Shown piece by piece: positions 1 to 63,764 of a stretch of DNA of 64,000 nt (its first letter is position 1; every line of letters starts with the position of its first letter). The notes beneath the pieces were generated by a model. That model was given only the letters and a program-made list of their open reading frames with translations, did no database searches and was not told where the DNA came from. Where the stretch lies: positions 1 through 64,000 of the forward strand of contig NIVC01002536.1 in NCBI GenBank assembly GCA_002269645.1, read 5' to 3'. The position numbers and the translations under genes were made by a program. Source of the DNA: Macrostomum lignano. Lineage: Eukaryota.

Positions 1-264
1 CAGCTAGGTGAATCCCTAGGTTACACATGTATGCTTGGTGACAAAAAGTAGAATCTTAGTAAGACAGAAGTTAGACCTAGAACAATTGTAATTATAGTCT
101 GTGCTATATTCTATAAAAAACTAGGCCTAAATGCAAAAAAAAACATGTCAAAGTAATTATTCTTTATAATGATAACAATGCACTATTATATAAGCTATCA
201 AATAAACACTGCTAAAGTCAATCACTTTCATAATATATCTACTATTCCAGTAAAATAAAAAGTA

Positions 265-352
265 ATGGCGAAGAATATGGCGAATCTCCCGAAGACTATG
301 GCGAATCTCCCGAAGAATATGGCGAATCTCCCCGAGAATATGACGAATCGCC
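265..352. repeat. 21-bp minisatellite, ~4 copies (TATGGCGAATCTCCCGAAGAA)
   Basis: Unit directly visible; produces the spurious RHILREI repeat in ORF 157..360. Confidence 0.85.
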
Positions 353-375
353 ATGCGCACATTACATACGCTCGT

Positions 376-715
376 ATCTAAGCTAATTTACCTGAGCACA
401 TTGCATATCTAAGCTAATTTACCTGAGCACATTGCATATCTAAGCTAATTTACCTGAGCACATTGCATATCTAAGCTAATTACCTGAGCACATTGCATAT
501 CTAAGCTAATTTACCTGAGCACATTGCATATCTAAGCTAATTTACCTGAGCACATTGCATATCTAAGCTAATTTACCTGAGCACATTGCATATCTAAGCT
601 AATTTACCTGAGCACATTGCATATCTAAGCTAATTTACCTGAGCACATTGCATATCTAAGCTAATTTACCTGAGCACATTGCATATCTAAGCTAATTTAC
701 CTGAGCACATTGCAT
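376..715. repeat. 31-bp minisatellite, 11 copies (ATCTAAGCTAATTTACCTGAGCACATTGCAT)
   Basis: Unit starts at 376, 407 ... 685; near-perfect copies, one with a 1-nt deletion. Confidence 0.95.
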
Positions 716-749
716 CTGGGAAAATCTTTCTGAACAACAGAAAAAATTA

Positions 750-1141
750 TGATATCGGGTCTTGCAGAATCAGCGTCAGGGCGCATCTGTCTGGGCTTGG
801 ACGCGAACGTAGGCCTCGCGCTGACGCGAATCTGGGGCTCCGGGGATCTTGCGGCCTGCCAGCAGGAGTCGCCAGCATCGGAACAGGTCGGCGCGGTGCA
901 TAAGACTACGGTTTTCAGCGTGTTGGCCACCAAGCATGCCGAGCCGCCTTGACGGTTCGCGTCGACCCACGCGTCACCGCAACAGAAGTTCTCGTCGAAG
1001 GAAGAGCAGTTCGCAGCGTACAGTGAAGCACCAGAACGAACCGGAACGGCGCCTAACAAATTCCCTGAAGCACCTCAGAGGATATGTTAGCACAGCAGCC
1101 TTCATAACACGGCACATCGTTTTGGTTGCAGAAAGCAGCTG
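750..1141 (-). CDS. Probable coding exon(s) of an unidentified Cys-rich protein
   Basis: GC-rich island between two arrays. Frame of ORF 697..1059 has strong G/C third positions (AANCSSFDENFCCGDAWVD...CTAPTCSDAGDSCW); a second Cys-rich stretch (FCNQNDVPCYEGCC) follows an AG at ~1142. Family not recognised, splicing unresolved. Confidence 0.3.
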
Positions 1142-1177
1142 CTCTGGTATAATTGAGACATCTGAACAAATCTACAT

Positions 1178-2322
1178 GAGCATATGGCATCTGAGCATAT
1201 GGCATCTGAGCATATGGCATCTGAGCATATGGCATCTGAGCATATGGCATCTGAGCATATGGCATCTGAGCATATGGCATCTAAGCATATGCATCTGAGC
1301 ATATGGCATCTGAGCATATGGCATCTGAGCATATGGCATCTGAGTATATGGCATCTGAGCAAATAGGATCTGAGCATATGGCATCTAAGCATATGGCATC
1401 CGAGCATATGGCATCTGAGCATATGGCATCTGAGCATATGGCATCTGAGCAAATAGGATCTGAGCATATGGCATCTGAGCATATGGTATCTGAGCAAATA
1501 GGATCTGAGCATATGGCATCTGAGCATATGGCATCTGAGCATATGGCATCTGAGCATATGGCATCTGAGCATATGGCATCTGAGCATATGGCATCTGAGC
1601 AAATAGGATCTGAGCATATGGCATCTGAGCAAATAGGATCTGAGCATATGGTATCTGAGCATATGGCATCTGAGCATATGGCATCTGAGCATATGGCATC
1701 TGAGCATATGGCATCTGAGCATATGGCATCTGAGCAAATAGGATCTGAGCATATGGCATCTGAGCAAATAGGATCTGAGCATATGGCATCTGAGCATATG
1801 GCATCTGAGCAAATAGGATCTGAGCATATGGCATCTGAGCATATGGCATCTGAGCAAATAGGATCTGAGCATATGGCATCTGAGCATATGGTATCTGAGC
1901 AAATAGGATCTGAGCATATGGCATCTGAGCATATGGCATCTGAGCATATGGCATCTGAGCATATGGCATCTGAGCATATGGCATCTGAGCATATGGCATC
2001 TGAGCAAATAGGATCTGAGCATATGGCATCTGAGCAAATAGGATCTGAGCATATGGTATCTGAGCATATGGCATCTGAGCATATGGCATCTGAGCATATG
2101 GCATCTGAGCATATGGCATCTGAGCATATGGCATCTGAGCAAATAGGATCTGAGCATATGGCATCTGAGCAAATAGGATCTGAGCATATGGCATCTGAGC
2201 ATATGGCATCTGAGCAAATAGGATCTGAGCATATGGCATCTGAGCATATGGGATCTGAGCATATGGCATCTGAGCATATGGCATCTGAGCATATGGCATC
2301 TGAGCATAAGGCATCTCAGCAT
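1178..2322. repeat. 15-bp minisatellite, ~76 copies (GAGCATATGGCATCT with variant GAGCAAATAGGATCT), 405-bp higher-order period
   Basis: Unit visible; the GTATC marker variant recurs at 1651 and 2056 (27 units apart). Confidence 0.95.
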
Positions 2323-3114
2323 GATACCCGAGAAAACACTAGAGCCAAGCAAGCTTCGTGAGTCTTTAATAGTTGTTGAGTATAGGACAAGTTAAAATTA
2401 TTGACAGAAACGTTATTTTCCAGATTCTTAAAAAATTATTGCATGCAGAACTCAAATTACACGTAGAAGTTAATTAAATGTAGGACCTAGAAAGCATCAT
2501 ATCATTTAAAAAATTGATAAGGATAAGTTGCTCGTAACATGAACTATTGTACTTATTTCTGCAGTGTGTACTACGAACAGCAGAAACTTCAAATGAAAAG
2601 ACAAATGCGTTTTAGATGTTTAAAGAAAAAAACTTCATTGGTGAAGTGAATCAGCTGCCGATCACAATCAAACATCTTGTCAGCAGTGATGCACAACATG
2701 CTTGTTCAGCCAAATCGTTATCTCAAAGCAGCGAACTTGAACTCGACCTGAGGTGTCCAGACAGCCCTCTCCAATCTCAAACTCAACTTTTAGACTTCTA
2801 TAAATGGAATAAACAATTTTAGCGACTCAAACCTTTAGCTATTGTTCTCAAACTACTTGAGAAGCTCAGTGTGTGCTTTCTATAACACATTGCATGCAGG
2901 CGGGCAGGCCAACAAATTCAATTCAAATGCAGTAGTATTCAAGTTCAATGCCCTCAGAGCCTTGGCAATGAGTGGCAAATGGACAATAAAGCTAAAAGAT
3001 GGCTAAGACATACTGTAAGGGTCTAACCATCCAAGAAAAGACGGCAGCACGTGAAGGGGACACAGCGGAGCCCTCGGCATTCCAGCGACCGGAAAAACGT
3101 GCTGATTTCTACAC

Positions 3115-3122
3115 TATAAATA
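3115..3122 (+). promoter_or_regulatory. TATA box (TATAAATA) of the peptide gene
   Basis: Canonical TATAAATA ~100 nt upstream of the ATG at 3222. Confidence 0.5.
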
Positions 3123-3221
3123 CAGGGCCCTTGGATGCCCAGCAGACAACCAAGCAGCCAAGGCTAGATAACTCTACCAGCTTCTCAGCTTCATCAGGCT
3201 ACAGCTCTTAACTTCTTCATC

Positions 3222-3491
3222 ATGAGGTGGCAGTTTGTTCTCGGACTCCTGCTGTGCGCAGCTCTGGCCGCCGCCAGACCCAACAGCCAGGAGAACAGCC
3301 AAGAGGACGCGGAGGCGATGGCGGCGCTGGAGGCTCTGGCCGACATGGACGAGCCGGAGATGACGGACGAGAAGGCCGCCGAGCTGCAGAAGAAGTGGCT
3401 CCTTCGCCGCATCCGCATCAGGTGGAGGAGGGTGCTCCGCGTTGCCAGCAGGGTCTACAGGATCTACCGCTACCTGCCGATAGGCAAGTAG
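3222..3491 (+). CDS. Secreted prepro-peptide, 89 aa; putative cationic antimicrobial peptide precursor
   Basis: Signal peptide (aa 1-18), acidic pro-region (12 D/E in aa 24-54), KK site (57-58), 29-aa mature region with 10 Arg and no acidic residue, C-terminal G-K amidation signal; high GC3; TATA upstream, AATAAA downstream. Confidence 0.8.
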   Translation: MRWQFVLGLLLCAALAAARPNSQENSQEDAEAMAALEALADMDEPEMTDEKAAELQKKWLLRRIRIRWRRVLRVASRVYRIYRYLPIGK

Positions 3492-3646
3492 GTAGACTGC
3501 AGGCAGGTGCTCCGCTGCACCCACTGACCTCGGACACGGACCGGACACCGCCCATGATCGCCGGCCTTTCAACTGTGGGACTCAATCAGATTATTTCTAG
3601 TTGCTAACCATGTACTGTAACTGTATTGTTGACTGAAATATAATTT

Positions 3647-3652
3647 AATAAA
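3647..3652 (+). terminator. Polyadenylation signal AATAAA of the peptide gene
   Basis: First AATAAA downstream of the stop at 3491. Confidence 0.55.
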
Positions 3653-3669
3653 GTATTCCCTACACTGAG

Positions 3670-6600
3670 ACTACTAAGCAACGGCAGATGGCTTGATTTT
3701 GGAGGTGAGGTGGGTGTCAACCCTCCTCGCCTCTCATTGGCTGGCGCCCCGATCACTAGGTGATCGATACCCGTATCGATATCGGCGACTCGAACCCGCG
3801 ACCCTCCCCAGCCGCAGGCGCACCTACCGATATTAGATCCCAATAAATCAATCAGATCCCAAATCAATCAGATCCCAAATCAATCAGATCCCAAGCGCAC
3901 CCTCCCGAGCCGCAGGCGCCCATGCAGCAGGCGCCCATGCCGCAGGCACCCCGAGTGTACACTCTCCCGATATGTGTGTACACCGATATGTAGTCATCGA
4001 TACGGGCCTCTTCCCCTCTCTCACCTACATCTCAACTAGCGAAATCGAACCCAGGTCGCGCCCATACTAGGACACTACACGGTTGTGGGGTATAGGGAGC
4101 GAGAAGTTTCAACCCTAACGCTGACGCAGCCCTGTACAGTGAGAGTGTACGGGCAGAGAGGGGTGGGGCGGACAGAGAACCAGCCACTAGGTTGTTATAC
4201 TGTTGAAGCATAGGGAGCGAGAAGTTTTAACCCCGATGCTGACGCAGCCCTGTACACTGAGCGTGTACGGGCAGAGGGTGGGTGGAAAGAGATGTGAATA
4301 ACACAGCCTGCTGCAGGAGCCGGATAGAGAGGCGCATGCTAGGACAGAGAGGTAGTGTGAGTCACACACACCCCACAGAGAAAGCCATACAGAGGATAGA
4401 GAGCTCCCTCCCCAGTTGCAGGGGACAGAGAGGCAGGCAGGGTATGCAGGGGCATGCGAACCGTCAAGGGGCCACGCGAGGATAGAGTGGAGGAGCAGAG
4501 ATGTGTTTGGACAGAGAGCCAGCCACGTGTGCGTAGTGTGAGGGAACAGAAACATATGGAGCAGGAGGGAGATAGGAAGCAAACGCGCAGGGTAAGGGAG
4601 CCATGCAGCAGGGAGCAGTGTACAGTGAGACACGGGCAGGGGTGGAGCCGTGCGTGGACAGAGCTGAACGGCACGGTCAGCTGCAGGAATAGGATGATAG
4701 AGAGGCGCGGAGGGGGACAGAGAGCAGTGTGCAGGGTAGGCAGCCACGCAGGCTGGGGAACAGAGAGGCGCGTGTCAGCCAGTTACAGCCCGGGACAGAG
4801 AAGTATGAAGGGGGGCCTGGGACAGAGAAGTATGAAGGGGGGCCTGGGACAGAGTTGCGAGCAAGGCACAGAGAGAGGTAGGGTCCGGTAGCTATGTATA
4901 GGCAGGGACCCACGCGAGGGCAGGACAGGGCATGCAAGGCATGCAAATTACATGCAAGGGCAGTGAGGTGTGCGCGGAGGGAGACAGAGAGCAGTGTGTA
5001 GGGGTAGGTAACAGCAAACTTTAGTAGAGGCGCGTGCGGGGACGGAGAAACCAGTCTGAGCGTACAGAGACGTTACAGAGAGGTACACAAACAGAGACCA
5101 AAGCGGGCAGAGCACGTGTAGGGACAGAGACGTGAGGGAGAATAGACCAAAACACGCTATGTATTTTCAAAAGTTGGTTTTAGTGCAGCATATTTAATAG
5201 CGGGTAGTATAATAGTATGTACATAGTAGGTATAATGGTAGTAATAATAGTAAGTATATTAGCCCAAAAGGTAGGCTAAAACAGGCTAAACTGTGTGTAC
5301 GCATCCTCATCACCCCACAAGCCCCCTCTCCCGCCAGACTCACTCTTCCATACCCTCCTGTATTGCTGTATGAAGGAAAATATAGTGTAAAAATACAGAT
5401 CTTAACCGTCAGACCGCTGAAATCAGGGCACACTAGAGGGGTTTCGGGGTCTGCATGCTCTATGTAAGCTGTTTCAATTATGTTTTGAAAAAACTAGGGG
5501 CTTAAATACAACGTTTTATTCAAAAAGTAGGTTATTTTAATGAAATAGCTGACACAATCATTGTCGAGAGTAGAAATTTTTATAAGAAACCAGGCATTTT
5601 AGCAAAAATAAACCTTCAAACCACATAAAATTGAATAAAAAGCAGACATTTTCAATTATAAACCGCAAGTATTTTAATAGAAAAGTAAGCAAACAAGGCA
5701 CAAAACCAGCAAATTTTACCTTTTTATTTTAATGTTACTGATAAGGTAGAGAGTAGAAACTTGTGAGCTGTACGGAGTTAGAAAGTATTAACCATTATGT
5801 ATCGTATGAATTATTAGTTCAGTACCAGCCATTGGTCAAGCGAGCATTTATGAAGTTATTACGAGTGATGAAGGGATAGAGAGCTATATACAGGAAGACA
5901 GTATCCTTCTAAACCACCACGAACAGATTGCTAATAGAGATAAGCTTTGTCTGTGTGCAGTATGAGTAAGCGAAGGCGGGGCAAATACTTTTCCACATGC
6001 CGGACAGAACAGTATTGTGCTAGGATTTCTCTCGAAATCACGGTACGTTACTAGTTTTTATCACACCATCCAGATGCGTCAACTAGTCAGCAGTAGTCAT
6101 TTATATGTTATTAGAACTTACAAACCCAGGTCAAGTAAATATTACAAAGAGTATATTACGTACACACGCCAACTCCGAATACCAAGCCATACTAGTCTAC
6201 TTGCAGTGCTCCTGGAGGGAAGGGACGGCGGGGTGTACATCCGGCAGGGTGGGCGTCCAGCGAGTGTACATCTGACAGGATGGGTGTTCAGCAAGTGTAC
6301 ATCTGACAGGGTGGGCGTTCAGCAAGTGTACCTTCAGCGTCGAGTAGGTGTACACCCGTCAGTGGGGAACTCCACCCCTCCCACCAATGTCGTGTGCATG
6401 CGGTTAGTCAGTATAGTGGTGGGGTAGACGGTGCAGGAAGGAAACCCAGATGCTGACGCTGCCCTGTACAGCGAGCAACCAGCCCCCTGTAGCAGGAGGG
6501 GGACAGAGAGTGCGTGGAGGCAGTAGGAGATAGAGGACGCTACCCGGCATGTCGCAGCACGCGGCGCGGGACAGAGGCAGTGTGTAAGTCACCCCGCGGA

Positions 6601-9600
6601 GAGAGCTCCCCTGGCAGGAGGCGCGGGACAGAGAGGCGGTGAATCACACCCCACGGAGAGAGCCGTACAACGAGCTTCCCCACCCGAGTCCGGTAAATAT
6701 TACAGAGTATTACGTGCACACGCCAGCCCTGAATACCAAGCCATACTAGTCTACCTGCAGTGCTCCCAGAGGGAAGGGATGGTCAGGAGTTACACACCAA
6801 GAATGCATTCATACAAAGAGTACACAACTCGAGCCCAGACACCAAGTCACAGTCTACTTACAGTAGAGATGGTAGATTAATAGCAAGATTATATTACAAT
6901 TAGACCTCCCTAGCACATGAGGAGTGAAATTCAATAATAATTGAATTCAATAATAATACAACATTTAGACGTAGTAATTTAATTACAAAATACCACTAAC
7001 ACTGAGCCAACGAATTGTAGGTTACAAAGGAGTTGCCACTCATATGGAAAGCCAGTATAATGCAGGTGTGTATTATTAAAACATAGACAAAAACGATGCA
7101 GACGTATATACACACTATTGATTTTGTACATGTACATTTCGGCATATTACCACACATCGCGGGCACATATTATATATCGGGGGATAGGTTAAAATACACA
7201 CATCGTAGATGTAGAAGCAGACACAATGCAGGAAAATTATGATACGAGTGTACATATTAGTGCGTAAAAGTATCATATTATGACACCCTGTAGCACATAT
7301 TGACATAATGCAGGGGAAAATATTGACAGAAATAGTACACAATTGTAGAGGTAACAACCAGCCAACTAGTAAGGGCATCCAGCACTTGTTCAGGTTTTTT
7401 TTATTTCGAGACGAGTGTCATGCCCCCGCAAGAGATCTTATCAGAAATTTGTTGAACTCCACTGCAACTCTCCCCAGAACCTCCAAATGGGAGTTTTAAC
7501 ACTTGAGGGATCCCGCTCAATGTACAGTGCGGACGGAGAGGGGTAACAGAAAGCGCTGCATCAGACCGCGGAGCTGCATTCCTCCCCCGAGGTAGGCGCG
7601 TCAGCTCCCACTCCTCATTTAACCATCAAGTAAACTAAAGAAGTCAAGCAGAAAGCCTTACAATCACCCGCAACCAGCACAAGTAAGAGTACTTTCCACT
7701 AGAGAGCCATAGTGCAAGATTCGCGAGCCAAGTTGAAGAAGCACACCAAATTACACTAAAGACATATGTATTAAAAAGCATACCGGCACCTCTACAAAAA
7801 CACAGTATGTACCGATTAAAGTTGCTTTTGGTGCAGTGTATTTAATAAAAAGCAGGTACCTAACACAAAAGTAGGCATCAATGCAGTGCACGGGCTAAAC
7901 TGTATTTACAAACGCAGGGCAACGAACTACACACAATGTAGCGCATAGACATAATTGTACACATAAATGTACGCAATTTCCGGTATATAGGACCAAATGT
8001 ACGCAAATGTACACAATGTACACAAACACACACACACTCAGGCGTATTCACAGCAAGAGCTTCCTGCCGATGGCGCCATCGCCTGCGGCGATCGGTGCTG
8101 CAGGATGCGCTGCAGGATGCGCCTGAGTGTGTGTGTGTTTGTGTGCATTGTGTACATTTGCGTACATTTGGTCCTATATACCGGAGATTGCGTACATTTA
8201 TGTGTACAATTATGTCTATGCGCTACATTGTGTGTAGTTCGTTGCCCTGCGTTTGTAAATACAGTTTAGCCCGTGCACTGCATTGATGCCTACTTTTGTG
8301 TTAGGTACCTGCTTTTTATTAAATACACTGCACCAAAAGCAACTTTAATCGGTACATACTGTGTTTTTGTAGAGGTGCCGGTATGCTTTTTAATACATAT
8401 GTCTTTAGTGTAATTTGGTGTGCTTCTTCAACTTGGCTCGCGAATCTTGCACTATGGCTCTCTAGTGGAAAGTACTCTTACTTGTGCTGGTTGCGGGTGA
8501 TTGTAAGGCTTTCTGCTTGACTTCTTTAGTTTACTTGATGGTTAAATGAGGAGTGGGAGCTGACGCGCCTACCTCGGGGGAGGAATGCAGCTCCGCGGTC
8601 TGATGCAGCGCTTTCTGTTACCCCTCTCCGTCCGCACTGTACATTGAGCGGGATCCCCTCAAGTGTTAAAACTCCCATTTGGAGGCTCTGGGGAGAGTTG
8701 CAGTGGAGTTCAACAAATTTCTGATAAGATCTCTTGCGGGGGCATGACACTCGTCTCGAAATAAAAAAAACCTGAACAAGTGCTGGATGCCCTTACTAGT
8801 TGGCTGGTTGTTACCTCTACAATTGTGTACTATTTCTGTCAATATTTTCCCCTGCATTATGTCAATATGTGCTACAGGGTGTCATAATATGATACTTTTA
8901 CGCACTAATATGTACACTCGTATCATAATTTTCCTGCATTGTGTCTGCTTCTACATCTACGATGTGTGTATTTTAACCTATCCCCCGATATATAATATGT
9001 GCCCGCGATGTGTGGTAATATGCCGAAATGTACATGTACAAAATCAATAGTGTGTATATACGTCTGCATCGTTTTTGTCTATGTTTTAATAATACACACC
9101 TGCATTATACTGGCTTTCCATATGAGTGGCAACTCCTTTGTAACCTACAATTCGTTGGCTCAGTGTTAGTGGTATTTTGTAATTAAATTACTACGTCTAA
9201 ATGTTGTATTATTATTGAATTCAATTATTATTGAATTTCACTCCTCATGTGCTAGGGAGGTCTAATTGTAATATAATCTTGCTATTAATCTACCATCTCT
9301 ACTGTAAGTAGACTGTGACTTGGTGTCTGGGCTCGAGTTGTGTACTCTTTGTATGAATGCATTCTTGGTGTGTAACTCCTGACCATCCCTTCCCTCTGGG
9401 AGCACTGCAGGTAGACTAGTATGGCTTGGTATTCAGGGCTGGCGTGTGCACGTAATACTCTGTAATATTTACCGGACTCGGGTGGGGAAGCTCGTTGTAC
9501 GGCTCTCTCCGTGGGGTGTGATTCACCGCCTCTCTGTCCCGCGCCTCCTGCCAGGGAGCTCTCTCCGCGGGGTGACTTACACACTGCCTCTGTCCCGCGC

Positions 9601-12494
9601 CGCGTGCTGCGACATGCCGGGTAGCGTCCTCTATCTCCTACTGCCTCCACGCACTCTCTGTCCCCCTCCTGCTACAGGGGGCTGGTTGCTCGCTGTACAG
9701 GGCAGCGTCAGCATCTGGGTTTCCTTCCTGCACCGTCTACCCCACCACTATACTGACTAACCGCATGCACACGACATTGGTGGGAGGGGTGGAGTTCCCC
9801 ACTGACGGGTGTACACCTACTCGACGCTGAAGGTACACTTGCTGAACGCCCACCCTGTCAGATGTACACTTGCTGAACACCCATCCTGTCAGATGTACAC
9901 TCGCTGGACGCCCACCCTGCCGGATGTACACCCCGCCGTCCCTTCCCTCCAGGAGCACTGCAAGTAGACTAGTATGGCTTGGTATTCGGAGTTGGCGTGT
10001 GTACGTAATATACTCTTTGTAATATTTACTTGACCTGGGTTTGTAAGTTCTAATAACATATAAATGACTACTGCTGACTAGTTGACGCATCTGGATGGTG
10101 TGATAAAAACTAGTAACGTACCGTGATTTCGAGAGAAATCCTAGCACAATACTGTTCTGTCCGGCATGTGGAAAAGTATTTGCCCCGCCTTCGCTTACTC
10201 ATACTGCACACAGACAAAGCTTATCTCTATTAGCAATCTGTTCGTGGTGGTTTAGAAGGATACTGTCTTCCTGTATATAGCTCTCTATCCCTTCATCACT
10301 CGTAATAACTTCATAAATGCTCGCTTGACCAATGGCTGGTACTGAACTAATAATTCATACGATACATAATGGTTAATACTTTCTAACTCCGTACAGCTCA
10401 CAAGTTTCTACTCTCTACCTTATCAGTAACATTAAAATAAAAAGGTAAAATTTGCTGGTTTTGTGCCTTGTTTGCTTACTTTTCTATTAAAATACTTGCG
10501 GTTTATAATTGAAAATGTCTGCTTTTTATTCAATTTTATGTGGTTTGAAGGTTTATTTTTGCTAAAATGCCTGGTTTCTTATAAAAATTTCTACTCTCGA
10601 CAATGATTGTGTCAGCTATTTCATTAAAATAACCTACTTTTTGAATAAAACGTTGTATTTAAGCCCCTAGTTTTTTCAAAACATAATTGAAACAGCTTAC
10701 ATAGAGCATGCAGACCCCGAAACCCCTCTAGTGTGCCCTGATTTCAGCGGTCTGACGGTTAAGATCTGTATTTTTACACTATATTTTCCTTCATACAGCA
10801 ATACAGGAGGGTATGGAAGAGTGAGTCTGGCGGGAGAGGGGGCTTGTGGGGTGATGAGGATGCGTACACACAGTTTAGCCTGTTTTAGCCTACCTTTTGG
10901 GCTAATATACTTACTATTATTACTACCATTATACCTACTATGTACATACTATTATACTACCCGCTATTAAATATGCTGCACTAAAACCAACTTTTGAAAA
11001 TACATAGCGTGTTTTGGTCTATTCTCCCTCACGTCTCTGTCCCTACACGTGCTCTGCCCGCTTTGGTCTCTGTTTGTGTACCTCTCTGTAACGTCTCTGT
11101 ACGCTCAGACTGGTTTCTCCGTCCCCGCACGCGCCTCTACTAAAGTTTGCTGTTACCTACCCCTACACACTGCTCTCTGTCTCCCTCCGCGCACACCTCA
11201 CTGCCCTTGTATGTAATTTGCATGCCTTGCATGCCCTGTCCTGCCCTCGCGTGGGTCCCTGCCTATACATAGCTACCGGACCCTACCTCTCTCTGTGCCT
11301 TGCTCGCAACTCTGTCCCAGGCCCCCCTTCATACTTCTCTGTCCCAGGCCCCCCTTCATACTTCTCTGTCCCGGGCTGTAACTGGCTGACACGCGCCTCT
11401 CTGTTCCCCAGCCTGCGTGGCTGCCTACCCTGCACACTGCTCTCTGTCCCCCTCCGCGCCTCTCTATCATCCTATTCCTGCAGCTGACCGTGCCGTTCAG
11501 CTCTGTCCACGCACGGCTCCACCCCTGCCCGTGTCTCACTGTACACTGCTCCCTGCTGCATGGCTCCCTTACCCTGCGCGTTTGCTTCCTATCTCCCTCC
11601 TGCTCCATATGTTTCTGTTCCCTCACACTACGCACACGTGGCTGGCTCTCTGTCCAAACACATCTCTGCTCCTCCACTCTATCCTCGCGTGGCCCCTTGA
11701 CGGTTCGCATGCCCCTGCATACCCTGCCTGCCCCTCTGTCCCCTGCAACTGGGGAGGGAGCTCTCTATCCTCTGTATGGCTTTCTCTGTGGGGTGTGTGT
11801 GACTCACACTACCTCTCTGTCCTAGCATGCGCCTCTCTATCCGGCTCCTGCAGCAGGCTGTGTTATTCACATCTCTTTCCACCCACCCTCTGCCCGTACA
11901 CGCTCAGTGTACAGGGCTGCGTCAGCATCGGGGTTAAAACTTCTCGCTCCCTATGCTTCAACAGTATAACAACCTAGTGGCTGGTTCTCTGTCCGCCCCA
12001 CCCCTCTCTGCCCGTACACTCTCACTGTACAGGGCTGCGTCAGCGTTAGGGTTGAAACTTCTCGCTCCCTATACCCCACAACCGTGTAGTGTCCTAGTAT
12101 GGGCGCGACCTGGGTTCGATTTCGCTAGTTGAGATGTAGGTGAGAGAGGGGAAGAGGCCCGTATCGATGACTACATATCGGTGTACACACATATCGGGAG
12201 AGTGTACACTCGGGGTGCCTGCGGCATGGGCGCCTGCTGCATGGGCGCCTGCGGCTCGGGAGGGTGCGCTTGGGATCTGATTGATTTGGGATCTGATTGA
12301 TTTGGGATCTGATTGATTTATTGGGATCTAATATCGGTAGGTGCGCCTGCGGCTGGGGAGGGTCGCGGGTTCGAGTCGCCGATATCGATACGGGTATCGA
12401 TCACCTAGTGATCGGGGCGCCAGCCAATGAGAGGCGAGGAGGGTTGACACCCACCTCACCTCCAAAATCAAGCCATCTGCCGTTGCTTAGTAGT
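3670..12494. mobile_element. 8.8-kb foldback (palindromic) element with 6-bp TSD; Maverick/Polinton-like non-autonomous derivative
   Basis: Arms 3670-8044 and 8120-12494 are reverse complements (coordinate sum 16164/16165; mirrored ORFs such as 4187..4747 and 11417..11977). Ends ACTACT...AGTAGT; ACTGAG at 3664-3669 and 12495-12500. The structure is directly seen; the family assignment is inference. Confidence 0.85.
3845..3893. repeat. 16-bp tandem x3 (AAATCAATCAGATCCC) in the left arm; mirrored at ~12271-12319
   Basis: Directly visible in both arms. Confidence 0.85.
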
Positions 12495-13118
12495 ACTGAG
12501 ATTAATTTTGTACTGGATTTAATTAGTTCGGGCAAAAACTTATAATCTGTTTGGAGTTTCGTGTTCAACATTATTTAATTGATTAGCATTTAGTCTGCAG
12601 ACCCGCACATTGATTAATAAATTCAAGGGTTTAATTGCAATTTACTCAGGTTTTTAAATACTCATTTACACAGGCAAATCATTTAGCAGCAGTAAGCAAC
12701 AAAAAGTGTATATTTAATTTTTTATGACACCAGAGCAACATGAGCAGACCTACTCGACTTACTCAAAAATCCATGGCTCATTTTAGGCACTGGAAGCGGC
12801 CAGTCATAAAATGACGTAGTAAAAATAATGAGCTAATGTAAAAACTACCTAATAACAATTTGTAACAGTAGGTGAAGTCTGGCTAGCTGGGATTTATAAA
12901 ACATGATCGAAAAATTCAAATTTACAATGCATTTGGATTAGATTAATATATGCCAATTGACTTAATTAGTAACTGGTAGATGAAAAATGACTAAGTGTCG
13001 GGTCATGATTAAAACTTATATTATACAAAACAGATGGAAATGCACATTGCATTGATACCGATTTCTTCCTAACACGGATTAATAACGTTCACCAGTTAGT
13101 TATTGGATTGGAAGTAAT

Positions 13119-15732
13119 CCCGACCGAAAATATTTGTCCTTTCAAAAACAGTAAGTGTGCCAGTTGTGCCACAAATATGCCCTTTGACAGAGTTATAAAT
13201 GTCTTTGTATGTCATATTTGGCACACTTGATACAATTGTACCAATTGTGCCGTAGCTATGCCATTTGGCACAGTTTGTAAATGTCGATGTATGTCCTATT
13301 TGGCACACTTGACACAAATAGTATTTTTACTGCTAATTGGCCAATGAAACCAATTGGCACACTTAACACACTTGCTACAATTGTGCCAGTTGTGCCACAG
13401 CCATAACATTTAGCACAGTTATAAATGTCTTTGTACGTCCCATTTGGCACACCTGGCACAAATAACATTTTTATAGCTAATTCCCCTTGGAAACCATTTG
13501 GCACACTTGGCGCACTTACTACAAGTGTACCAGTTGTGCCACAGCTATACTATTTGACACAGTTATATATGTCTTGGACTGTCCTTCTTGGCACACTTGG
13601 CACGAATATCCTTTTTATAGCTAATTGGTTATTAAAACAGACTGGCACACTTGGCCCACTTGCTACAATTGTACCAGTTGTGCCACAGCTATGACATAAT
13701 TGGCACAGTTATATGTCTTTGTCCTTCTTGGCACACTTGGCTCAAATAACCTTTTTTATTGCTAATTACTAACAAAACTATTTGGCACACACCTGGTGCA
13801 ACTTGCACTGAGGCTGCGACGTCAGTAGCTTCGATTTCGGCAGATGACCGGCAGGTTTTCACTCCCAACTTGCGGCATGATCTGCTCAGACGCTCGAAAA
13901 TGGCGCAACCGCGTTTGATTGACGCCATTACAAAAGAACTAAAGCAGCAGATCACGCAGCATTTCGCCGTCCATCTAGATCAGCTCGTGGACCCAGCCGT
14001 CACAGTTGATAACATGCTGGTCGACGACAATGGAAAGAAATTATACCACGGTAAGAAATTAATAGTCCTTCATTTATGATCGCGCAAATATCCTATTGTT
14101 ACTCTCAAACGCTCTTCAATCCTTAAAAAAACACCTCTGCAGCCAATCGGTTTCGCCTTTACGTCCAACGTCGCTCGGACCAGGGTCACGGCCAGTAAGG
14201 ATATATCAAGAACCAACGACTCCGGCCAACCTCAATGCACTTCTCCGCGAGATGGTGCGGGGGTGCTTCAGCGACGACGAGATTTTGGTAACGTCGTTGA
14301 GCGGTCGCGCTACTGAGCCTGGTCGGCCACGCCTGCTACCTGGCTGGAATCGACATCCCAACCAATGAATGCGATTGAAAAGGTCACGTCCGATGCTCCA
14401 TCACCGTCAGTCGGCGTGAAAAGCAATCCGGACGTTTGCCTGTAAAGAAACTTCGTCAAGGTGCGGCTAATGCACTCGCGAGGACTGAGCGCCGGATGTC
14501 TGCTGTTGCATCTAGCAAAACTAAACTTGTTTGGCAGATGCGGGACCCGTCTAGCTTGGCCTGTCTCCCTCATGTTTCTGGTTTTGTTTTCCCCTGGAAA
14601 TATGCTCTTTCCCACATAAAGTAACGAACTACATTACTATAGTTAGTTCCAGACTCGTAAATTACAATAGCACCAGGAATCAGACTTGTTGTCTAACTAG
14701 AAAAGTATAGGGGAACAGAGGTATTGGAGTTGGTTTCACTAATTGCTTGTTTTTTTATCTAGTTGTTTGTTTGTGCTTTTTAAATTAATACATTAGATGT
14801 ATACATGTTGCTACATTAAAATCCTGTGCCACGTGTAGTCGACTCAGTAGTTAATTTGTTACATTGCATGTTTTAGTTTCAAATGTATTAGAAGTGTAAA
14901 CTCTTTGGCTGGCACCACAATTTTCATGCACCGCGCTTTTTAATTACGTTGTTTTTTGTTTCCTGTCCAATGTCCGCTGTCTGTTATGTTTCTTTCCGTT
15001 AACTTCTAGTATGCATTTTTTAATTCCGCAGCCTCCCCTTTTTCCTGTTTTATACATGTTTTTTGTCCTATTTGCTACTTCCCATTAAATATATACGTAC
15101 CTGGTATTTATGCAACATCCCTTTTTCCAACTGTTTCAATCTGTTTATGTTCGCGCTCAACATTTTAAAGTTAAATTTACATTAACAACTCTTTTCAATT
15201 TGTCTTCCCTCATTTAAACATGAGAAGGACTTCTCGCAAAATCTTAGCTACTTCATACATACGCTTCATAACTCGTAGTTGACTAACGGGTCAACTATAA
15301 CAGCATCAGATAGCATATTATGCGCTTAGTTCAACTGCTTTAAACTGCAAATTCACTCGTCTGGAGAATTTACGCCAAATGGCACAGTACGCGCTAGTTT
15401 AACTGCTTCAAGCTGCACATTTACTCGTATTGTGCCAAATGGTACATTTATGGCACAGTTGTGCACAATTATAAGCACTCAAAAATAGCTGAGACAACTG
15501 GCACAGTTGTGGCACAGTTGTGGCACAGCAGTGCACAATTAAAAATTTGATTCTTAATTGTGTCACATGTGCCAATTGGCACAGCTTGGCACAGTTAAAT
15601 TTGTGCCAAGCTGTGCCACCAATTGTCGATTCTCACAAATTTCGTGTCGTTTCGACAGTTATTTTGGGATTCCCCCCAATTCATTTTTATGTGCTATTTG
15701 ACGCATTTAAAGAACAATTATTTCCGGTCGGG
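13119..15732. mobile_element. CMC/EnSpm(CACTA)-like non-autonomous DNA transposon, 2.6 kb
   Basis: Imperfect ~26-bp TIRs (CCCGACCGAAAATATTTGTCCTTT vs reverse complement of right end CCCGACCGGAAATAATTGTTCTTT); AT on both sides (13117-8, 15733-4); dense subterminal GGCAC/GTGCC repeats at both ends (144-bp period on the left). Confidence 0.7.
13900..14624 (+). pseudogene. Decayed BEN-domain gene inside the TIR element
   Basis: 14231-14335 encodes LNALLREMVRGCFSDDEILVTSLSGRATEPGRPRL, matching the BEN pattern L..lF+.eEL...s.sG.....p.L. GT-AG intron 14051-14142; pieces lie in different frames. Confidence 0.5.
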
Positions 15733-16226: not shown

Positions 16227-18220
16227 CTAGCCTCGCAATCCTAATTCGGAGACTTTCCGTTGAGCAAACTGCATAACAACCATTGAAGTGCCGTTAGCTA
16301 AGAAGCTGCGAATGGTGCCCGGCAGCAGGCCGCGATAAAGTCCGAAGAAGCCGCCTCGCTGCTTAATAGTGAGCCTGAGCCTGGCAAGGGTTGGCATGGG
16401 CTGGCCATACTGGCCCTGCACCTGGCTCTTCATGTACTCCAGCGGCCACACGAGCCACCAGGCGGCTGTCGCAGCCATTCCCGATGCCAAGAACGGTCCA
16501 GCAACTGAACGGGCAAAAAAGTCCGGAAAATGTCTCCGACCGGAGTCAATTAAAACAAAGTAAGTAGTCATTAGGCCGAGGGTTCGAACCCAGGTGACGC
16601 TGAAACCGCTGTAGAGTCCGCCTAGGGTCCAAGTTTGGCCAGTTTGGCGACGGATTTTCGCCACTTCAAGCGGGCACTCGATTATGGCGCGAGCGGTGGA
16701 GGCCAGAATGCCGCCTAAGATGACCCGCCTGCGGCGATGGGGAGAGCGCTGATGCTGAAACGCTGATGGGGAGAGCACTGTATCAGCCATGGAGTGCTGT
16801 GGGCTTATAGTCCTCATCTGATACAGTGCTGTGGGGCTTATAGTCCTCATCTGATACAGTGCTGTGGGGCTTATAGTCCTCATCTGATACAGTGCTGTGG
16901 GGCTTATAGTCCTCATCTGATACAGTGCTGTGGGGCTTATAGTCCTCATCTGATACAGTGCTGTGGGGCTTATAGTCCTCATCTGATACAGTGCTGCGGG
17001 GCTTATAGTCCTCATCTGCTACAGTGCTGTGGGGCTTATAGTCCTCATCTGATACAGTGCTGTGGGCTTATAGTCCTCATCTGATACAGTGCTGTGGGCT
17101 TATAGTCCTCATCTGATACAGTGCTGTGGGCTTATAGTCCTCATCTGATACAGTGCTGTGGGCTTATAGTCCTCATCTGATACAGTGCTGTGGGGCTTAT
17201 AGTCCTCATCTGATACAGTGCTGTGGGGCTTATAGTCCTCATCTGATACAGTGCTGTGGGCTTATAGTCCTCATCTGATACAGTGCTGTGGGCTTATAGT
17301 CCTCATCTGATACAGTGCTGTGGGCTTATAGTCCTCATCGGATACAGTGCTGTGGGGCTTATAGTCCTCATTTGATACAGTGCTGTGGGGCTTATAGTCC
17401 TCATTTGATACAGTGCTGTGGGGCTTATAGTCCTCATCTGATACAGTGCTGTGGGGCTTATAGTCCTCATTTGATACAGTGCTGTGGGGCTTATAGTCCT
17501 CATCTGATACAGTGCTGTGAGCTTATAGTCCTCATCTGATACAGTGCTGTGGGGCTTATAGTCCTCATTTGATACAGTGCTGTGGGGCTTATAGTCCTCA
17601 TTTGATACAGTGCTGTGGGCTTATAGTCCTCATCTGATACAGTGCTGTGGGCTTATAGTCCTCATCTGATACAGTGCTGTGGGTCCTCAGATGGGGTGGT
17701 GGTGGCTGAGTCTCGCTGCTGGGGTTAAGGTGGCAAATCAATATTGAAGATTGAAACGCTACAATCGTTGGGATTGATAGCACTCACCCTTGCACTCCGC
17801 CGGTGAAGGGGATGGGCTCAATAAACAGACTAGAGCTCAAGCCGGTGTAGACACTTTCGAACACGGCAAATTGGGTTGAACGAAAAATTCCAGAGCCCCA
17901 CAGAGGCGGAATGCAACCCCTAGGATGTATAAAAGGCAGGGAATTAATTTATATTGAACTTCGTGTCTTCTTGGTGAATCAAATGTAGACAGCGGCATTT
18001 AGACTTACCGATATAATCCAATAACTCCTTCAGCACGCCAAGTTTTGTTAAAAGCTTTCAGCATTCCGCCAGTGTCAAAGCCTTGCTGGGCCTGCATTTT
18101 GGTCTTCATAGTGTCAAATGGGTGGCCAACAACCACATTTGTGACACCATAGAGGATGCCAACGCCTAGACCTATGCCCCCTTCCTTAAGCCAATGAGCT
18201 CGTTTCTCATTGTGCGTCAT
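16227..18220 (-). CDS. Mitochondrial carrier (SLC25 family), ~281 aa, 3 exons
   Basis: Exons 18220-18009, 17919-17788, 16728-16227; GT-AG, phases 2/2 consistent; three carrier signatures (PFDTMKTKMQ, PLEVAKIRRQ, PLEYMKSQVQ). Subfamily not assigned. Confidence 0.92.
16793..17682. repeat. 33/32-bp intronic minisatellite, ~27 copies
   Basis: ATAGTCCTCATCTGATACAGTGCTGTGG(G)GCTT fills SLC25 intron 2. Confidence 0.95.
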
Positions 18221-21248: not shown

Positions 21249-24200
21249 ATGCAAAGAAGCACAAGTGTTCCCCTGAATTCATTGAAACTAAAAGAATCAG
21301 TATTGAACTCCATCAATATAGATGATAGTGAGAAAAGAGAAAATGTTGAAAATTGCAGCAAAGAATTAATAGAGGAATCCAATGAACCCTATAGTAGTAA
21401 TGGGTTATATATTTCTGATGATAAACTAGATAGAGCTTCAAGACCAAAAGAATATGCTCCAGCATCTAATCAAGATATAGGTAAGTTTTATAATTATAGT
21501 TTTGTTTTTAAATATTTTCCAAAAATTAAAATCTACATGCAAAAAGGTAATATATTATACTAAAAACTTGTTGTTTTTGGTAGATAGGTGGGTATGCATT
21601 AAATCATGAGTCTAGTTCTTATATATTTTGAACATTTGTCATAGCCTATAAAATAAGAGGCCCTGAAGTATTAAAAAAGATATTTTGCAATATAAAAAGT
21701 TAGAAGTTGTTTGAATTTGACTGTTTTTAGATTATTTTTAATAATAAAAAATAATATTAATAATTGTAAAAAGAATGTAATATGCATTTAAATTTTTTTC
21801 TAAGTATATACCCTTGCTTGAGATTCACCCATATAAGTTTAAAATTGCATTGCTGATAATTCTAGTGAATTTGACACCTTTATTAGAATAAATTTATTCT
21901 ATAGATAGGAAATAGATTAGTGCAGGTCTCGGCTAAAGAACATATGGCAAATTCAAACAGTTATGATAAGCAAATTAGAGTAACAAATTTCAATATGACG
22001 AAGCATCATTGCCTATTAAAGAGTGCATTGTTACTCTCACCGATTACCTATTTTCATCAGGCAGGAACACCCGCAGCTGCTCTGTGCATGCGATCAGCGC
22101 TGCAGCAGCTCAACAGCAGCAGCCTCTGCCATTGCAAGCTTTGCCAGCCAAAATTCGGGCCAGCAGCAGCCGTTTAGCCAGTCTTGGCCGATTATTCAAG
22201 CCATGGAAATGGCGCAAACGACGGGACAAAGATCCACCCGGTGAGGTCCCCTGCGGTGAGTGAGTTCATCGTGCCTGATTAGATCGAATTTCACACTCAT
22301 CTGGAATCAGTCTGATCTTTCCCAATTCCCATTGGCAACTGTAACCCGATAATGACATCCAATGGCCACGCCCTCAAATCATCTTTATTTCGGTTCCACC
22401 CACATCGTCTGTTTTCCCATCCCAGTTTGGCAGATATAAATTTTCTATTTGACTTAATTGTGCTTGGAAGTAAAGTATTTCTTCTACTTTAAGTAGCAGA
22501 GAAAGCTGATTGTTGCGCGATTTGTTTTAAATAAAGTTTACAACAAGCAGTTTCTGCCTGATGCAATTGGTAATTCTGTATACGACACACAATCCAACTC
22601 CAGTCGGGGACATATGCTGTTATTTTGAACTGAGGCCAGCTATGAAAATGCGCACAATATCCCACATCCCATTCCTTGGCTAACATGCAATCCTGACCCG
22701 GATTGTCTATCTCTCCACCCCCTGTAAGTAGTATGTTAGAGTTTTTTTCTATTATTTAATTGCGCATAATTAAAGCATTGGTTCTACTTGAAGTAGCAGA
22801 CAGCGCTGATTGTTGCGCGATTTAAAAAAAATTCTATACAGTAGGTAAGTATAACAACCAACTTAGATGGCGAGTTATTGACTAGTTTCGATACAGATAT
22901 ATTTACTCTCGCCTTATACTCGATTGTGTGAGTGTAACTGATAGGAGATGTTGGCATTTTACACTTAATTTTGAATTTCTTGACTCGTTACCATTCCTAG
23001 ATTCGATGGATAATTAGTGGGTGGATAATAGCCGTCTCACCAGTTCAATTCTCTACTTCACTTTCTGTACTCTGATTCTGTATGTAGATACCCACGCACA
23101 CGCAACACAGATACATACATTTCCGTTGTCTCAGCTGTCCTGTCCCTGTTCGCGCACACGTGGGTGGGGTTAGCTACCGGGACAGATCGATATAGCCAGA
23201 GAAGAGACCCGTACTACTGTAGGACAGAGCTACGTTTATGCTACATTATGATCGGCGCCTCGGCACACGTGTTATCTGTGCAATGCTGCCCTGCTTCTTA
23301 CCCAATGCCCGATCTGAACACAACAGCCTTTTTCATAGGCAAAATCTGTACTGCCGCATGCATAGCAAAATGGTGCAAGAGTACATTGTAAAATACCGAA
23401 CACCCACCCACTCACCCACCTTTACCTAGATGTCTTCCCCTGCTCTCTCTTTCTCTCTCTCTCTCTGCTCTTGAGCAAATCCTTAGTTTTATATACCTTT
23501 GGATTATTTTCTCAACCCCAGCCCTAAACCCCCCTGTCCGTTTTATATTGATCTTGAATCGCTGGAGTTCCCTCCTTAACGAATCCACCCACAATCCCCA
23601 TATAAGTATTATTCACCCAAATTCTGTAGCTCTGCCTCCTCCGCATTTCGCTTTCATTTCGCCTCAAGCATTATAATGTGATTTTTATTTAGTAAAGCAC
23701 CTCCAAAGGAAAGATTCCCAAAGCAGAAATGCTCAAATAGGTATCAATCCAGCTCTTAGTGGCTAATGCTGAAATTCTTCAGAAATCTTTTCCCAAGCCT
23801 GGCCAAGTCCAAAAGTTTCGAACAGCTGCTGAATCTTGATGTCGGTATGATAATGCATAATTCGCTAGTATTGTTTATTTATTCGTTATAAACACCTTAT
23901 GCCTACTGGGTTTGGCTGCTTAGTAGTATTCAAGTGTTTATATACATGTATGTGATTTGTTATAGAAAAGCAAGGTTTGCAACAAAGTTTTACTGATTTG
24001 CTTTGGCACCTTTGTCAGGTCTATAGCTAATTTGCTTTGTTCCAAACCCATATGTCTGACACCTAATCCCATAGTTCTTGTGACTTCATGACCCAATCCC
24101 ATAGTTCTTGTGACTTCATGACCCAATCCCATGATTCTTGTGACTTCATGACCCAATCCCATGATTCTTGTGACTTCATGACCCAATCCCATGATTCTTG

Positions 24201-29305: not shown

Positions 29306-30670
29306 TCCGCAATGGCTATTCAAATACGGAGAGAAGTTAACACGCTACTAACTTTACTACTGCACAAGTAGCGTATGTAGCATATTGCGCTTGTTGAGTA
29401 TTACATTTTTATCTATTAAAATTTTCCCATTTGTTCCGTTTAATAAAATTCCACGGATTTCCAAGAAACCAACTTTTTTGTTCTCCCAATTGGAGCTTTT
29501 CTTTGTCTCCTAGGTAACCGCGATTACGATAACAAATTGATAAAGTATTGCATTATGGTTTTGGCTTGTGCGTGTACCTTTTACTAAACTTTTGCTTGGA
29601 TTTTTTCAACTCTGTTGCAGAAGCAGAATTTATTTGGGACTCGATTAAAAGAATAAGAAGTACAATTTTGTGTTGGCTGTGCTTTTTGTTGTGCAATGAT
29701 AAATTTCCATGTTGGCTGCGTGCTTTTCTGTAAGTAGAGTTGGATAACCATTTATGAAACAATTAATTTTTGCAGAGCCTTTCGAACTCTTAACAGTTGC
29801 TGTGGTTTATTTTTGTTCATACGCATACATTTGCTCTAGTCATTGCTACCCATGTACTAATATAGTTTTTTTAGATTTACACATATATATCATAAAATGT
29901 ATACTAAAATCATGCTAACTACTAAGTAAGTAGCAAGATTTGTGCTTTAATTTTTTTTCAATTTCTGCGCCCATGCACGACTGTCTGGATCTGGATTCAA
30001 AACCGAAAGCTTGTTTAAAAATTTTACTCTCTAGTCCTGGCGCCTAAACAATTGCTTTTTTACAACTGACAAAGCTGTTCTCTCGAGTAATTACAGACTG
30101 ACTCATTAACGTAAAATATGCTATTTTATCGTGTGCTTTCTTAAATAAAGAAACTATATCGGCACTTGTATTAAACTGGTCGTTTACATTATATTATTAT
30201 TATTAATTCAATTAATTATTAAAGAATTATTCAACCCCTCTAATCCAACTTCTGAGGTTGACCTATATTTCAAGTGTTGTATTGTTCTTTCCTACCAAAA
30301 CGACTCGTACAATTTAAATAAATTTAACCATTACTAAAATTGACCACTTTTTGGATAGAAATTGACTTTGAAATGACACATACTGATGTGTCTAATTTAC
30401 TACATTTATCAGTATAACAAATTTGCTCATAATTTATTGCCACTCGCTATGCAAAATAAAGCAAGGGAAACAAGCAAAGGTTAATTAGAAGAGCCAACAG
30501 ATCAAATTGGTTTGCATGTATTGCAGTGCATCTGATGGCACATCTAGGAACACTGGTAGCTCATAAGCGCAATAATTTCAATTTACGAGATAAATAATTG
30601 AAGCTCAAATTTGGCTTTCTCTAGTTAGCACAAAGTTGGTGATGTGATTGAGAGTTGGGGTTTACTCAAG

Positions 30671-40497: not shown

Positions 40498-40820
40498 GCG
40501 ATGTACTTTTACTTTTATTAATCACTGCCTTTATCGAGGTTTTGTTATCTCAAGCATTTTCTTACCTGCTGTCATTGAAGTTTGTAGTATTGTCACCTGT
40601 AAATTTTTAAGCCGAAATATAAAGCAAAACTGAACGCGAGATCATTGCGTGTCTGCTGTGTTGTCAGTGATAAAAAGTTTTCGATTGTAAATGAGCTGAA
40701 TGAAACAATTTTAGTAATAAAAATACGTAAGTGTACGAGTATTTGTAATTTTGACAGAGATTACGTAAACTCATGATATTGGTACATTATTTTCATTTGA
40801 CTTTCGAGACTTTGTTGCGT

Positions 40821-52900: not shown

Positions 52901-63764
<10,864 letters not shown>

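Follow-up and report, generated by a model that had tools for sequence, protein, structure and literature searches.

The precursor gene and its transcription signals

The first 64 kb of contig NIVC01002536.1 from the Mlig_3_7 assembly of the flatworm Macrostomum lignano (64,000 nt, referred to below as the window) contains, at positions 3222-3491 of the + strand, an 89-aa open reading frame (ORF) encoding MRWQFVLGLLLCAALAAARPNSQENSQEDAEAMAALEALADMDEPEMTDEKAAELQKKWLLRRIRIRWRRVLRVASRVYRIYRYLPIGK, followed by a stop. The initial annotation of this DNA had placed here the probable precursor of a novel amidated Arg/Trp-rich antimicrobial peptide (AMP), made up of a signal peptide, a propiece with 12 Asp or Glu residues, a Lys-Lys pair, a tail with 10 Arg residues, and a Gly-Lys-stop end, and each of these elements was found where it had been drawn. 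All the features described in this section lie on the + strand. The putative signal peptide, MRWQFVLGLLLCAALAAA, occupies codons 1 to 18 (3222-3275), with predicted cleavage between AAA and RP. An n-region (MR), a hydrophobic core, and an A-x-A motif before Arg were recognized by inspection, and in an AlphaFold2 model built from a 16-member family alignment (mean predicted local distance difference test [pLDDT] score of 69.8), residues 3 to 17 form a helix. Among the entries considered from the survey of Irvine et al., paralogues whose signal differs from that of the window protein by one residue passed SignalP 4.1 (PMC10414684). The signal is followed by an acidic propiece of 40 residues (codons 19 to 58, 3276-3395), with 12 Asp or Glu versus 4 Lys or Arg residues, which is closed by Lys57-Lys58 (3390-3395), a candidate processing site whose second Lys is invariant in 16 diverse members of the family. 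The cationic tail, WLLRRIRIRWRRVLRVASRVYRIYRYLPI (29 aa, 3396-3482), is the putative mature peptide or the source of shorter fragments. It contains 10 Arg (34%), 2 Trp, and 4 Tyr residues, no acidic residue, and no Cys, and is also rich in Ile, Leu, Val, Trp, and Tyr. In the Gly-Lys-stop end (3483-3491), Gly88 would be the amide donor and Lys89 the target of a carboxypeptidase. The signal, the basic site, and the Gly followed by a basic residue are features of secreted, convertase-processed, C-amidated precursors, a class to which the protein appears to belong on sequence grounds.

We regard the ORF as a functional gene, free of introns and driven by a TATA box. Its GC content by codon position (0.63/0.44/0.88, compared to 0.45 to 0.48 in the flanks) shows the periodicity of a translated frame, and indels among the intact paralogues are all in frame. 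GenBank lists it as a single-exon coding sequence and annotates the identical protein on two Mlig_3_7 contigs. Given that the only source of that annotation was genome-guided assembly of RNA sequencing transcripts with experimentally defined ends (PMC5730564), the presence of the gene model implies transcript support. The second contig, NIVC01002243.1, is 99.8% identical to window positions 1-13488, in agreement with the documented high redundancy of the assembly (PMC5730564). The absence of introns, also proposed initially, is in concordance with the single-exon model and with the paralogue L003a, in which the length of a hybridization probe equals the genomic distance between its primers (see below). 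Two other frames were considered. An antisense stop-free run (132 aa, TTG start), longer than the ORF, lacks an ATG and faces a TATA box and an AATAAA that lie on the + strand, and it was rejected as the by-product expected opposite a coding frame with high third-position GC. An overlapping ORF in the +1 frame (126 aa, GTG start) was dropped, since the paralogues do not conserve the frame.

The TATA box and the AATAAA anticipated by the initial annotation are present at 3115 and 3647. The former, TATAAATA (3115-3122), is situated 107 nt upstream of the ATG, and 13 nt before it lies an upstream promoter element, CGGAAAAACGTGC (3090-3102), with an E-box-like ACGTG core. Judging from the position of the TATA box, the 5′ untranslated region (UTR) would span 3147-3221. 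From the expected start site up to the initiator codon there is no other ATG, and position -3 is an A. Within the 5′ UTR, a 26-nt block, CAGCTTCTCAGCTTCATCAGGCTACA (3178-3203), is identical in all copies of the gene with long tails (see below). The 3′ UTR (3492-3669) contains a conserved block after the stop, GGTGCTCCGCTGCACC.AC.GAC.T.GGACACGGA.CGGAC, common to the window, NIVC01002243.1, L004, L003a, and L003e, and the AATAAA (3647-3652) is found 156 nt past the stop. The predicted mRNA of ∼520 nt fits the 501-nt transcript of a paralogue.

The gene family and its cassette

An initial search with the window protein yielded two M. lignano "hypothetical proteins" with 74 to 77% identity. When profiles were run against 1.84 and 5.8 billion proteins, the number rose to 55 distinct sequences in 26 clusters at 90% identity, all of them from M. 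lignano except one encoded by a 929-bp Logan contig (L005; SRR31628392). The initial annotation had not recognized the family, and this proved accurate: no Pfam family matched the window protein at an E value of ≤10, PDB rendered one chance match only (E = 0.87), and no homologue outside Macrostomum was found in these searches. It had also suggested a tblastn search for paralogues sharing the pre-pro region, and such paralogues exist, with a constant pre-pro region and hypervariable tails. The window gene has all five features of the family, namely, the promoter cassette, the nearly invariant signal motif M[KR]WQ[FLI][AV]LGLLLC, an ALEAL-type acidic spacer, the Lys site, and a variable basic tail. 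The layout put forward initially (signal, anionic propiece, dibasic site, cationic peptide, and Gly donor) turned out to be a family-wide design, and this conservation gives the precursor logic, as read from the sequences, strong support. The family would be best filed as Macrostomum-specific anionic-propiece/cationic-peptide secretory precursors.

The tails range from 6 to 46 aa, and 22 of the 28 distinct ones end in Gly, Gly-Lys, or Gly-Lys-Arg. Long tails like that of the window have 28 to 34 residues and are characterized by Arg, Trp, and Tyr. Many others have 6 to 10 residues in strict alternation, such as FVRVRVRL, IFRVRVRI, WLRVRARVRI, FVRVHVRF, FIHIHF, and GFHVHFH, and the remaining types include a Pro-Arg repeat, a Tyr/Arg/His-rich tail (HYFVYHSRRRYYRRR...), and a two-Cys tail. 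The Pro-Arg repeat (FLRVRLPRVRMPRVRLPRVRLPRLRVRFRWSKK) is that of the Logan contig (P0006), which has the conserved promoter and resembles proline-arginine-rich AMPs; either it is an M. lignano copy that escaped annotation or it belongs to a congener.

The genes are clustered. Short-tail genes (P0009-P0012 and P0019-P0032) occur four per tandem array of 10 to 13 kb (L006, NIVC01000181.1; L007, NIVC01000619.1), and a long-tail cluster, L003, holds five copies in ∼27 kb, three of them intact and two pseudogenes, one that lacks its start and has acquired a stop and a frameshift, the second with a 1-bp deletion. Tandem clusters together with pseudogenes point to birth-and-death evolution. In the L003 interval, the three intact copies and two pseudogenes have no separate annotation: as tblastn revealed, the model BOX15_Mlig001477g4 (139 aa, L003 10001-37330), one of the two proteins of the initial search, is a chimera in which an exon-like first part of one copy is joined to a second copy at a distance of 27 kb, with read-through of a 5′ UTR, and further 5′ UTR-like fragments occur at L003 33495 and 35138. 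In the rest of the window, tblastn and blastn searches with the gene detected no second copy; weak matches at 266-349 and 54.3-55.7 kb correspond to translated minisatellites and were dismissed as chance.

All copies share a cassette formed by CGGAAAnACGTGC, a spacer, and ATAAAT. The element CGGAAAAACGTGC is kept in all long-tail copies and in the Logan contig, and CGGAAACACGTGCC takes its place in the L006 and L007 clusters, where every short-tail gene examined is preceded by CGGAAACACGTGCC, a spacer, and GCATAAAT. The motif (C/T)ATAAAT is found at equal spacing in nearly every copy examined; the pseudogene L003b has CATGAAT. When the long-tail copies were aligned, similarity set in abruptly at CGGAAAAACGTGC, ∼25 nt before the TATA box, and ran through the TATA box, the 5′ UTR block, the pre-pro coding region, and ∼50 nt of the 3′ UTR; farther upstream, the clades are unrelated. 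Thus, the duplicated and conserved unit is a compact promoter-to-poly(A) cassette of ∼0.55 kb.

The two parts of the coding region differ in constraint. For five intact long-tail copies, the ratio of nonsynonymous to synonymous divergence (dN/dS, Nei-Gojobori method) was 0.17 to 0.47 in the pre-pro region, with Fisher P values of 0.016 to 0.08 per pair, and 0.35 to 1.1 in the tail, which also had more indels and a higher synonymous divergence. For the acidic propiece, the values lay between 0.17 and 0.42. This contrast indicates that the scaffold is constrained and that the tail is relaxed or diversifying.

Members of the family had been listed before. Irvine et al. (2023) screened all the WormBase ParaSite flatworm proteomes with SignalP 4.1, ProP, and 11 AMP predictors (PMC10414684). 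In the entries of their S5 File consulted here, Mlig001477g4 is "Ungrouped 544" (positive in 82% of predictors), Mlig024774g1 and Mlig024774g2 are "Same genome 142" (100%), and Mlig008283g1 and Mlig025063g1 are "Same genome 116" (73 to 91%) (PMC10414684). These fAMP-LP candidates are literally the same family, entered there as three unrelated items, with cleavage set inside the tail to give 17- to 38-mers. Being single-genome entries, they were left out of the prioritized set, are absent from the main text, and were never synthesized. The window protein itself is not among the S5 File entries examined, from a pipeline that removed identical duplicate proteins (PMC10414684). The novelty claimed by the initial annotation holds only in part, since paralogues already figure as AMP-like candidates in S5 File. 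Searches of the main texts of the literature for the gene identifiers and peptide strings gave no match. Going by the literature searched, the family, its genomic organization, its promoter, and its gonad expression are first brought together here.

Surroundings of the gene

Downstream of the gene, an 8.8-kb palindrome (3670-12494), 99.5% self-reverse-complementary and with termini ACTACTAAGCAACGGCAGATGG..., has a direct repeat of 6 bp, ACTGAG, on either side (3664-3669 and 12495-12500). A paralogous "empty site" on NIVC01002243.1 (L001 140-200) has a single ACTGAG, so that insertion of a foldback-type transposon is likely. The near-identical gene copy on that contig carries this insertion as well. 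The first 177 bases of L001 match window positions 3494-3670, in the 3′ UTR of the gene, and continue straight into the equivalent of position 12495 onward. Another gene copy devoid of the foldback element must thus lie immediately upstream of L001, and a unit of ∼20 kb seems to be tandemly duplicated on NIVC01002243.1.

The insertion bears on whether the window copy is a nonfunctional or silenced duplicate in an otherwise real family, a reading to which we give only a very slim chance. It would be favored by the position of the foldback element, 17 nt past the AATAAA, by the high redundancy of the assembly (PMC5730564), and by the two pseudogenes among the five copies of the L003 cluster. Against it, the ORF, the promoter, the ATG context, and the AATAAA are all intact, and the identical protein occurs on two contigs, both with the insertion, under a transcript-based annotation.

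The window also contains minisatellite arrays at 1100-2360, 23940-26060, 40770-41660, 51920-52830, 54280-55700, and 56300-58140. They give long spurious ORFs in several frames, for example, in the repeats with a 15-nt period at 1.1 to 2.4 kb and in those at 24 to 26 kb, and, outside the gene, the only weak matches that the Arg-rich tail has in the window come from them. As for neighboring genes, identified by eye from their translations, we take 16227-17015 (- strand) to be a mitochondrial-carrier exon, and its equivalent on NIVC01002243.1 has a Mito_carr Pfam match. By the same means, 26950-28251 (+) presumably encodes a PHACTR-like protein, 30648-31436 (+) a reverse transcriptase/RNase H fragment, 31942-32961 (-) a leucine-rich-repeat protein, 48885-49490 (-) ribosomal protein L10, and 53619-60145 (-) exons of a P4-type ATPase.

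Processing, expression, and function

The 29-mer has a charge of +10. Its hydrophobic moment at 100° was 0.57 (P = 0.032 versus 2,000 shuffles), and 11-residue segments reached a helical moment of up to 1.03. The beta-type moment was not significant over the whole length (P = 0.47), being locally high in the stretch RIRIRWRR, where 11-residue segments reached up to 1.24. In the AlphaFold2 model, helices were placed, besides that of the signal, at residues 26 to 42 (in the propiece, with low confidence) and 49 to 84, with pLDDT values of 84 to 87 over residues 61 to 80. The tail is thus predicted to be an amphipathic helix.

The processing steps that we infer for the window protein, as well as its secretion, membrane activity, and tissue of expression, are as follows. 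In the endoplasmic reticulum, the signal peptide would be cut off after Ala18. The acidic propiece (net charge, about -8) might neutralize the Arg-rich tail (+10) and serve as its chaperone along the secretory route, until a convertase of the subtilisin type cleaves the Lys-Lys site behind the invariant Lys58. A carboxypeptidase would then strip the terminal Lys, and peptidylglycine alpha-amidating monooxygenase would turn Gly88 into a C-terminal amide, yielding a cationic, amphipathic, and largely helical WLLRR...YLPI-NH2 with a calculated monoisotopic mass of 3896.386 Da if uncut. The tail contains two Arg-Arg pairs and five RXXR motifs, and for this reason convertases could release shorter products, such as the 17-mer amide VLRVASRVYRIYRYLPI-NH2 (2135.284 Da). 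In the corresponding entry of Irvine et al., ProP made the equivalent cut in a paralogue, giving a 17-mer (PMC10414684). Of the product first proposed (29 aa, about +10, C-amidated), the amidation signal stands; the length, and with it the charge, is unsure in view of these internal sites and of the paralogue 17-mer.

Expression evidence comes from a paralogue. The transcript RNA815_1838.3 (501 nt), mapped to Mlig001477.g4 and studied by in situ hybridization (ISH) with a 364-nt probe, is recorded with the pattern "gonads" in its entry in Table S11 of Brand et al. (2020) (PMC7336406). The entry credits the gonad hybridization to Ramm et al. (2019), a study of socially sensitive genes, and the table separates gonads from testes, ovaries, prostate, antrum, gut, and pharyngeal glands (PMC7336406). 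Both primers match L003a exactly, 364 bp apart in the genome, the forward one in the equivalent of the 5′ UTR, and this identity of lengths indicates that the L003a transcript is collinear with the genome and has no intron. The size of the transcript agrees with a unit running from TATA box to AATAAA. L003a shares 78% protein identity and ∼82% DNA identity with the window copy; its gonad pattern is evidence for the subfamily, not proof for the window copy. As for other sources, the prostate and seminal-fluid candidates given in the supplements of Weber (2018) include none of the family, and twelve further family identifiers gave no match in those of Brand (2020). The sole match in the supplements of Grudniewska (2018), Mlig024774.g6, was discarded as an unrelated PRPF19 homologue.

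The initial annotation had compared the precursor with those of frog skin and of Hydra. Frog-skin precursors of the preprodermaseptin type have a conserved signal and acidic spacer, a dibasic site, and a hypervariable cationic peptide, often Gly-amidated, and form large multigene families. The Macrostomum family shares this design (constant pre-pro region, basic site, and variable cationic tail). There is no homology between the two: the site is Lys-Lys or xK instead of Lys-Arg, the peptides are Arg-rich instead of Lys-rich, the recorded paralogue pattern is gonads and not skin glands, and the gene is intronless, whereas frog-skin AMP genes are split. The Hydra arminin and periculin precursors resemble the window family in being secreted, paralogous, and lineage-restricted, with an acidic N-terminal and a cationic C-terminal part. 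Hydra AMPs are taxon-restricted multigene families with bipartite charge, and periculins from the female germline are deposited on embryos, which they protect (PMC10945409), a germline expression that finds a parallel in the "gonads" record of L003a. Here again there is no sequence homology, and activity is proven for the Hydra peptides, whereas the window peptide is known from its sequence. Periculins and many other Hydra AMPs have cysteine patterns, unlike the Cys-free window peptide, which for its part is bounded by the conserved Lys-Lys and a Gly-Lys amidation signal.

Membrane-active host defense is a plausible and, on sequence grounds, the most economical reading of this chemistry. We estimate at about one-half the probability that the window product is a host-defense (antimicrobial) peptide that would bind and disrupt anionic microbial membranes. 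In favor of this reading are the family-wide design, the charge, the helical moment and modeled helix of the tail, the predictor scores of the paralogue tails (PMC10414684), and the Hydra precedent. The closest paralogue studied by ISH being a gonad one, the likely site of action would be the protection of gametes, of the reproductive tract, or of laid eggs.

The gonad record can also be taken to indicate, as the main rival reading, that the peptide serves reproduction and is not primarily antimicrobial, which we regard as possible though doubtful. The family would then be a rapidly evolving group of cationic peptides secreted in the germline or gonads, processed in the same way and with a part in the maturation of gametes, in the interaction of sperm with egg or tract, or in the sexual conflict of this hermaphrodite. 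The "gonads" pattern of L003a came from a screen of socially sensitive genes, according to its Table S11 entry (PMC7336406), and a lineage-restricted, tandemly amplified family with a rapidly diverging mature region has the profile that Brand et al. described for reproduction genes in Macrostomum. On the other hand, "gonads" means both the testis and the ovary regions and not a sex-specific organ, the family is missing from the prostate and seminal-fluid candidates of Weber (2018), and extreme charge, amphipathicity, and an amide signal are hallmarks of membrane-active peptides. Reproductive AMPs being a known category, the reproductive and the antimicrobial readings are not mutually exclusive. 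A protamine-like sperm nuclear basic protein was rejected on account of the signal peptide, the hydrophobic content, and the Lys-Lys site and amidation signal, which point to secretion; proteins of that kind are nuclear, have no signal peptide, and combine a very high Arg content with few hydrophobic residues.

The short tails bring to mind other systems. Those with the alternating pattern and a C-terminal amide recall the designed beta-sheet amphiphiles (IRIK)2-NH2 and (VRVK)2-NH2, as a lead only, and the FIHIHF and GFHVHFH types recall His-based metal-binding heptapeptides. The likeness to the amphiphiles concerns other members of the family, the window peptide containing RIRIR but being predicted to be helical. 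A self-assembling structural peptide of eggshell, granule matrix, or adhesive, whose tails would form beta-sheets or coacervates, is nevertheless improbable. Such a role would suit the strictly alternating hydrophobic/basic tails of many members (FVRVRVRL-G, IFRVRVRI-G, WLRVRARVRI-G, FIHIHF-G, and GFHVHFH-G), the one Tyr/Arg/His-rich subfamily, and the window tail itself, with its four Tyr residues and the high beta-type moment around RIRIR; moreover, Macrostomum oocytes make their own eggshell material. However, over its whole length the moment of the window peptide is of the helical and not of the beta type, in concordance with its predicted helix, and the peptides are very short, with neither repeat architecture nor Gly-rich blocks.

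The initial annotation had left a toxin or a neuropeptide as alternatives, and both lose ground in view of the gonad signal, the hypervariable tails, the number of copies, and the restriction to one lineage. A neuropeptide or peptide hormone precursor, whose amidated C-terminal peptide would signal through a receptor, is very unlikely. In its favor, the precursor is of the secretory type, with a basic site for cleavage and a Gly that could donate the amide, and some relatives would give short RF-amide-like peptides (IFRVHVRF-G and FVRVHVRF-G). Yet the recorded paralogue signal is in the gonads and not in the nervous system, tails so variable in length and sequence, in more than 50 copies with pseudogenes, are unlike receptor-constrained ligands, and no orthologue was found in other flatworms among the 1.84 billion representative proteins. 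In addition, a charge of +10 is atypical, and the window peptide ends in LPI-amide, not in RF or RPRF. Flatworm FMRFamide-like peptides and neuropeptide F have an RF-amide or GRPRF-amide C terminus, flatworm-wide conservation, and neuronal expression. Membership in these groups was rejected on account of the LPI-Gly end, the lack of relatives outside Macrostomum in the searches made, and the paralogue pattern.

A toxin or chemical-defense peptide directed at prey or predators is highly improbable. Cationic, amphipathic, amidated peptides are common in cytolytic venoms, and the family is multigenic and hypervariable. Against this, the paralogue is recorded in the gonads and not in pharyngeal, epidermal, or rhabdite glands, and neither Pfam nor PDB linked the protein to a known toxin family. 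M. lignano feeds by grazing on diatoms, and we know of no venom apparatus in this species.

Several points weigh against host defense. AMP predictors have high false-positive rates. Twelve of the 20 candidates synthesized by Irvine et al. were inactive (PMC10414684). The tail dN/dS values are mostly below 1, with no clear signal of positive selection, which the few sites available do not allow us to claim. The internal Arg-Arg and RXXR sites may fragment the peptide, and with the foldback element so near, the formation of the 3′ end may suffer. The ISH probe and the window copy share only ∼82% identity, and upstream of the core promoter the clade formed by the window gene and L004 differs from the L003 clade; the window gene may therefore be expressed in another tissue. 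Furthermore, the gonad pattern as recorded for L003a, together with the selection of socially sensitive genes, fits a purely reproductive role equally well, and it is not an epithelial, gut, or wound-response pattern.

A broader view, which we consider rather unlikely, is that the family constitutes a germline arsenal of minimal self-organizing cationic peptides for reproduction instead of classical immunity. The peptides might cover gametes or eggs, or they might act in the conflicts that arise in a hermaphrodite between sperm and tract and between sperm and egg. They would form a series from the long helical window peptide to alternating amides of 6 to 10 residues (FIHIHF-NH2 and IFRVRVRI-NH2), the short ones perhaps giving beta-sheet or metal-binding assemblies, and a single E-box plus TATA cassette would drive them all.

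To our knowledge, no endogenous antimicrobial peptide has been characterized in a free-living flatworm model. Among cestodes, fAMP-LP-5 was described by Irvine et al. as the first AMP identified from a cestode species (PMC10414684). Transgenesis has been established in M. lignano (PMC5730564) and, together with RNA interference and ISH, makes it possible to test directly a large orphan family whose promoter is compact and conserved and whose precursor is simple. If the peptides are active, the family would represent a natural library in which a single scaffold carries more than 25 very different amidated sequences, all Arg/His-rich, and a case of germline-associated host defense outside Cnidaria, and its short promoter cassette might find use in tissue-specific transgenes. 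Should the peptides prove not to be antimicrobial, the family would constitute a clear rapidly diversifying family of reproductive peptides in a hermaphrodite used for sexual-selection research.

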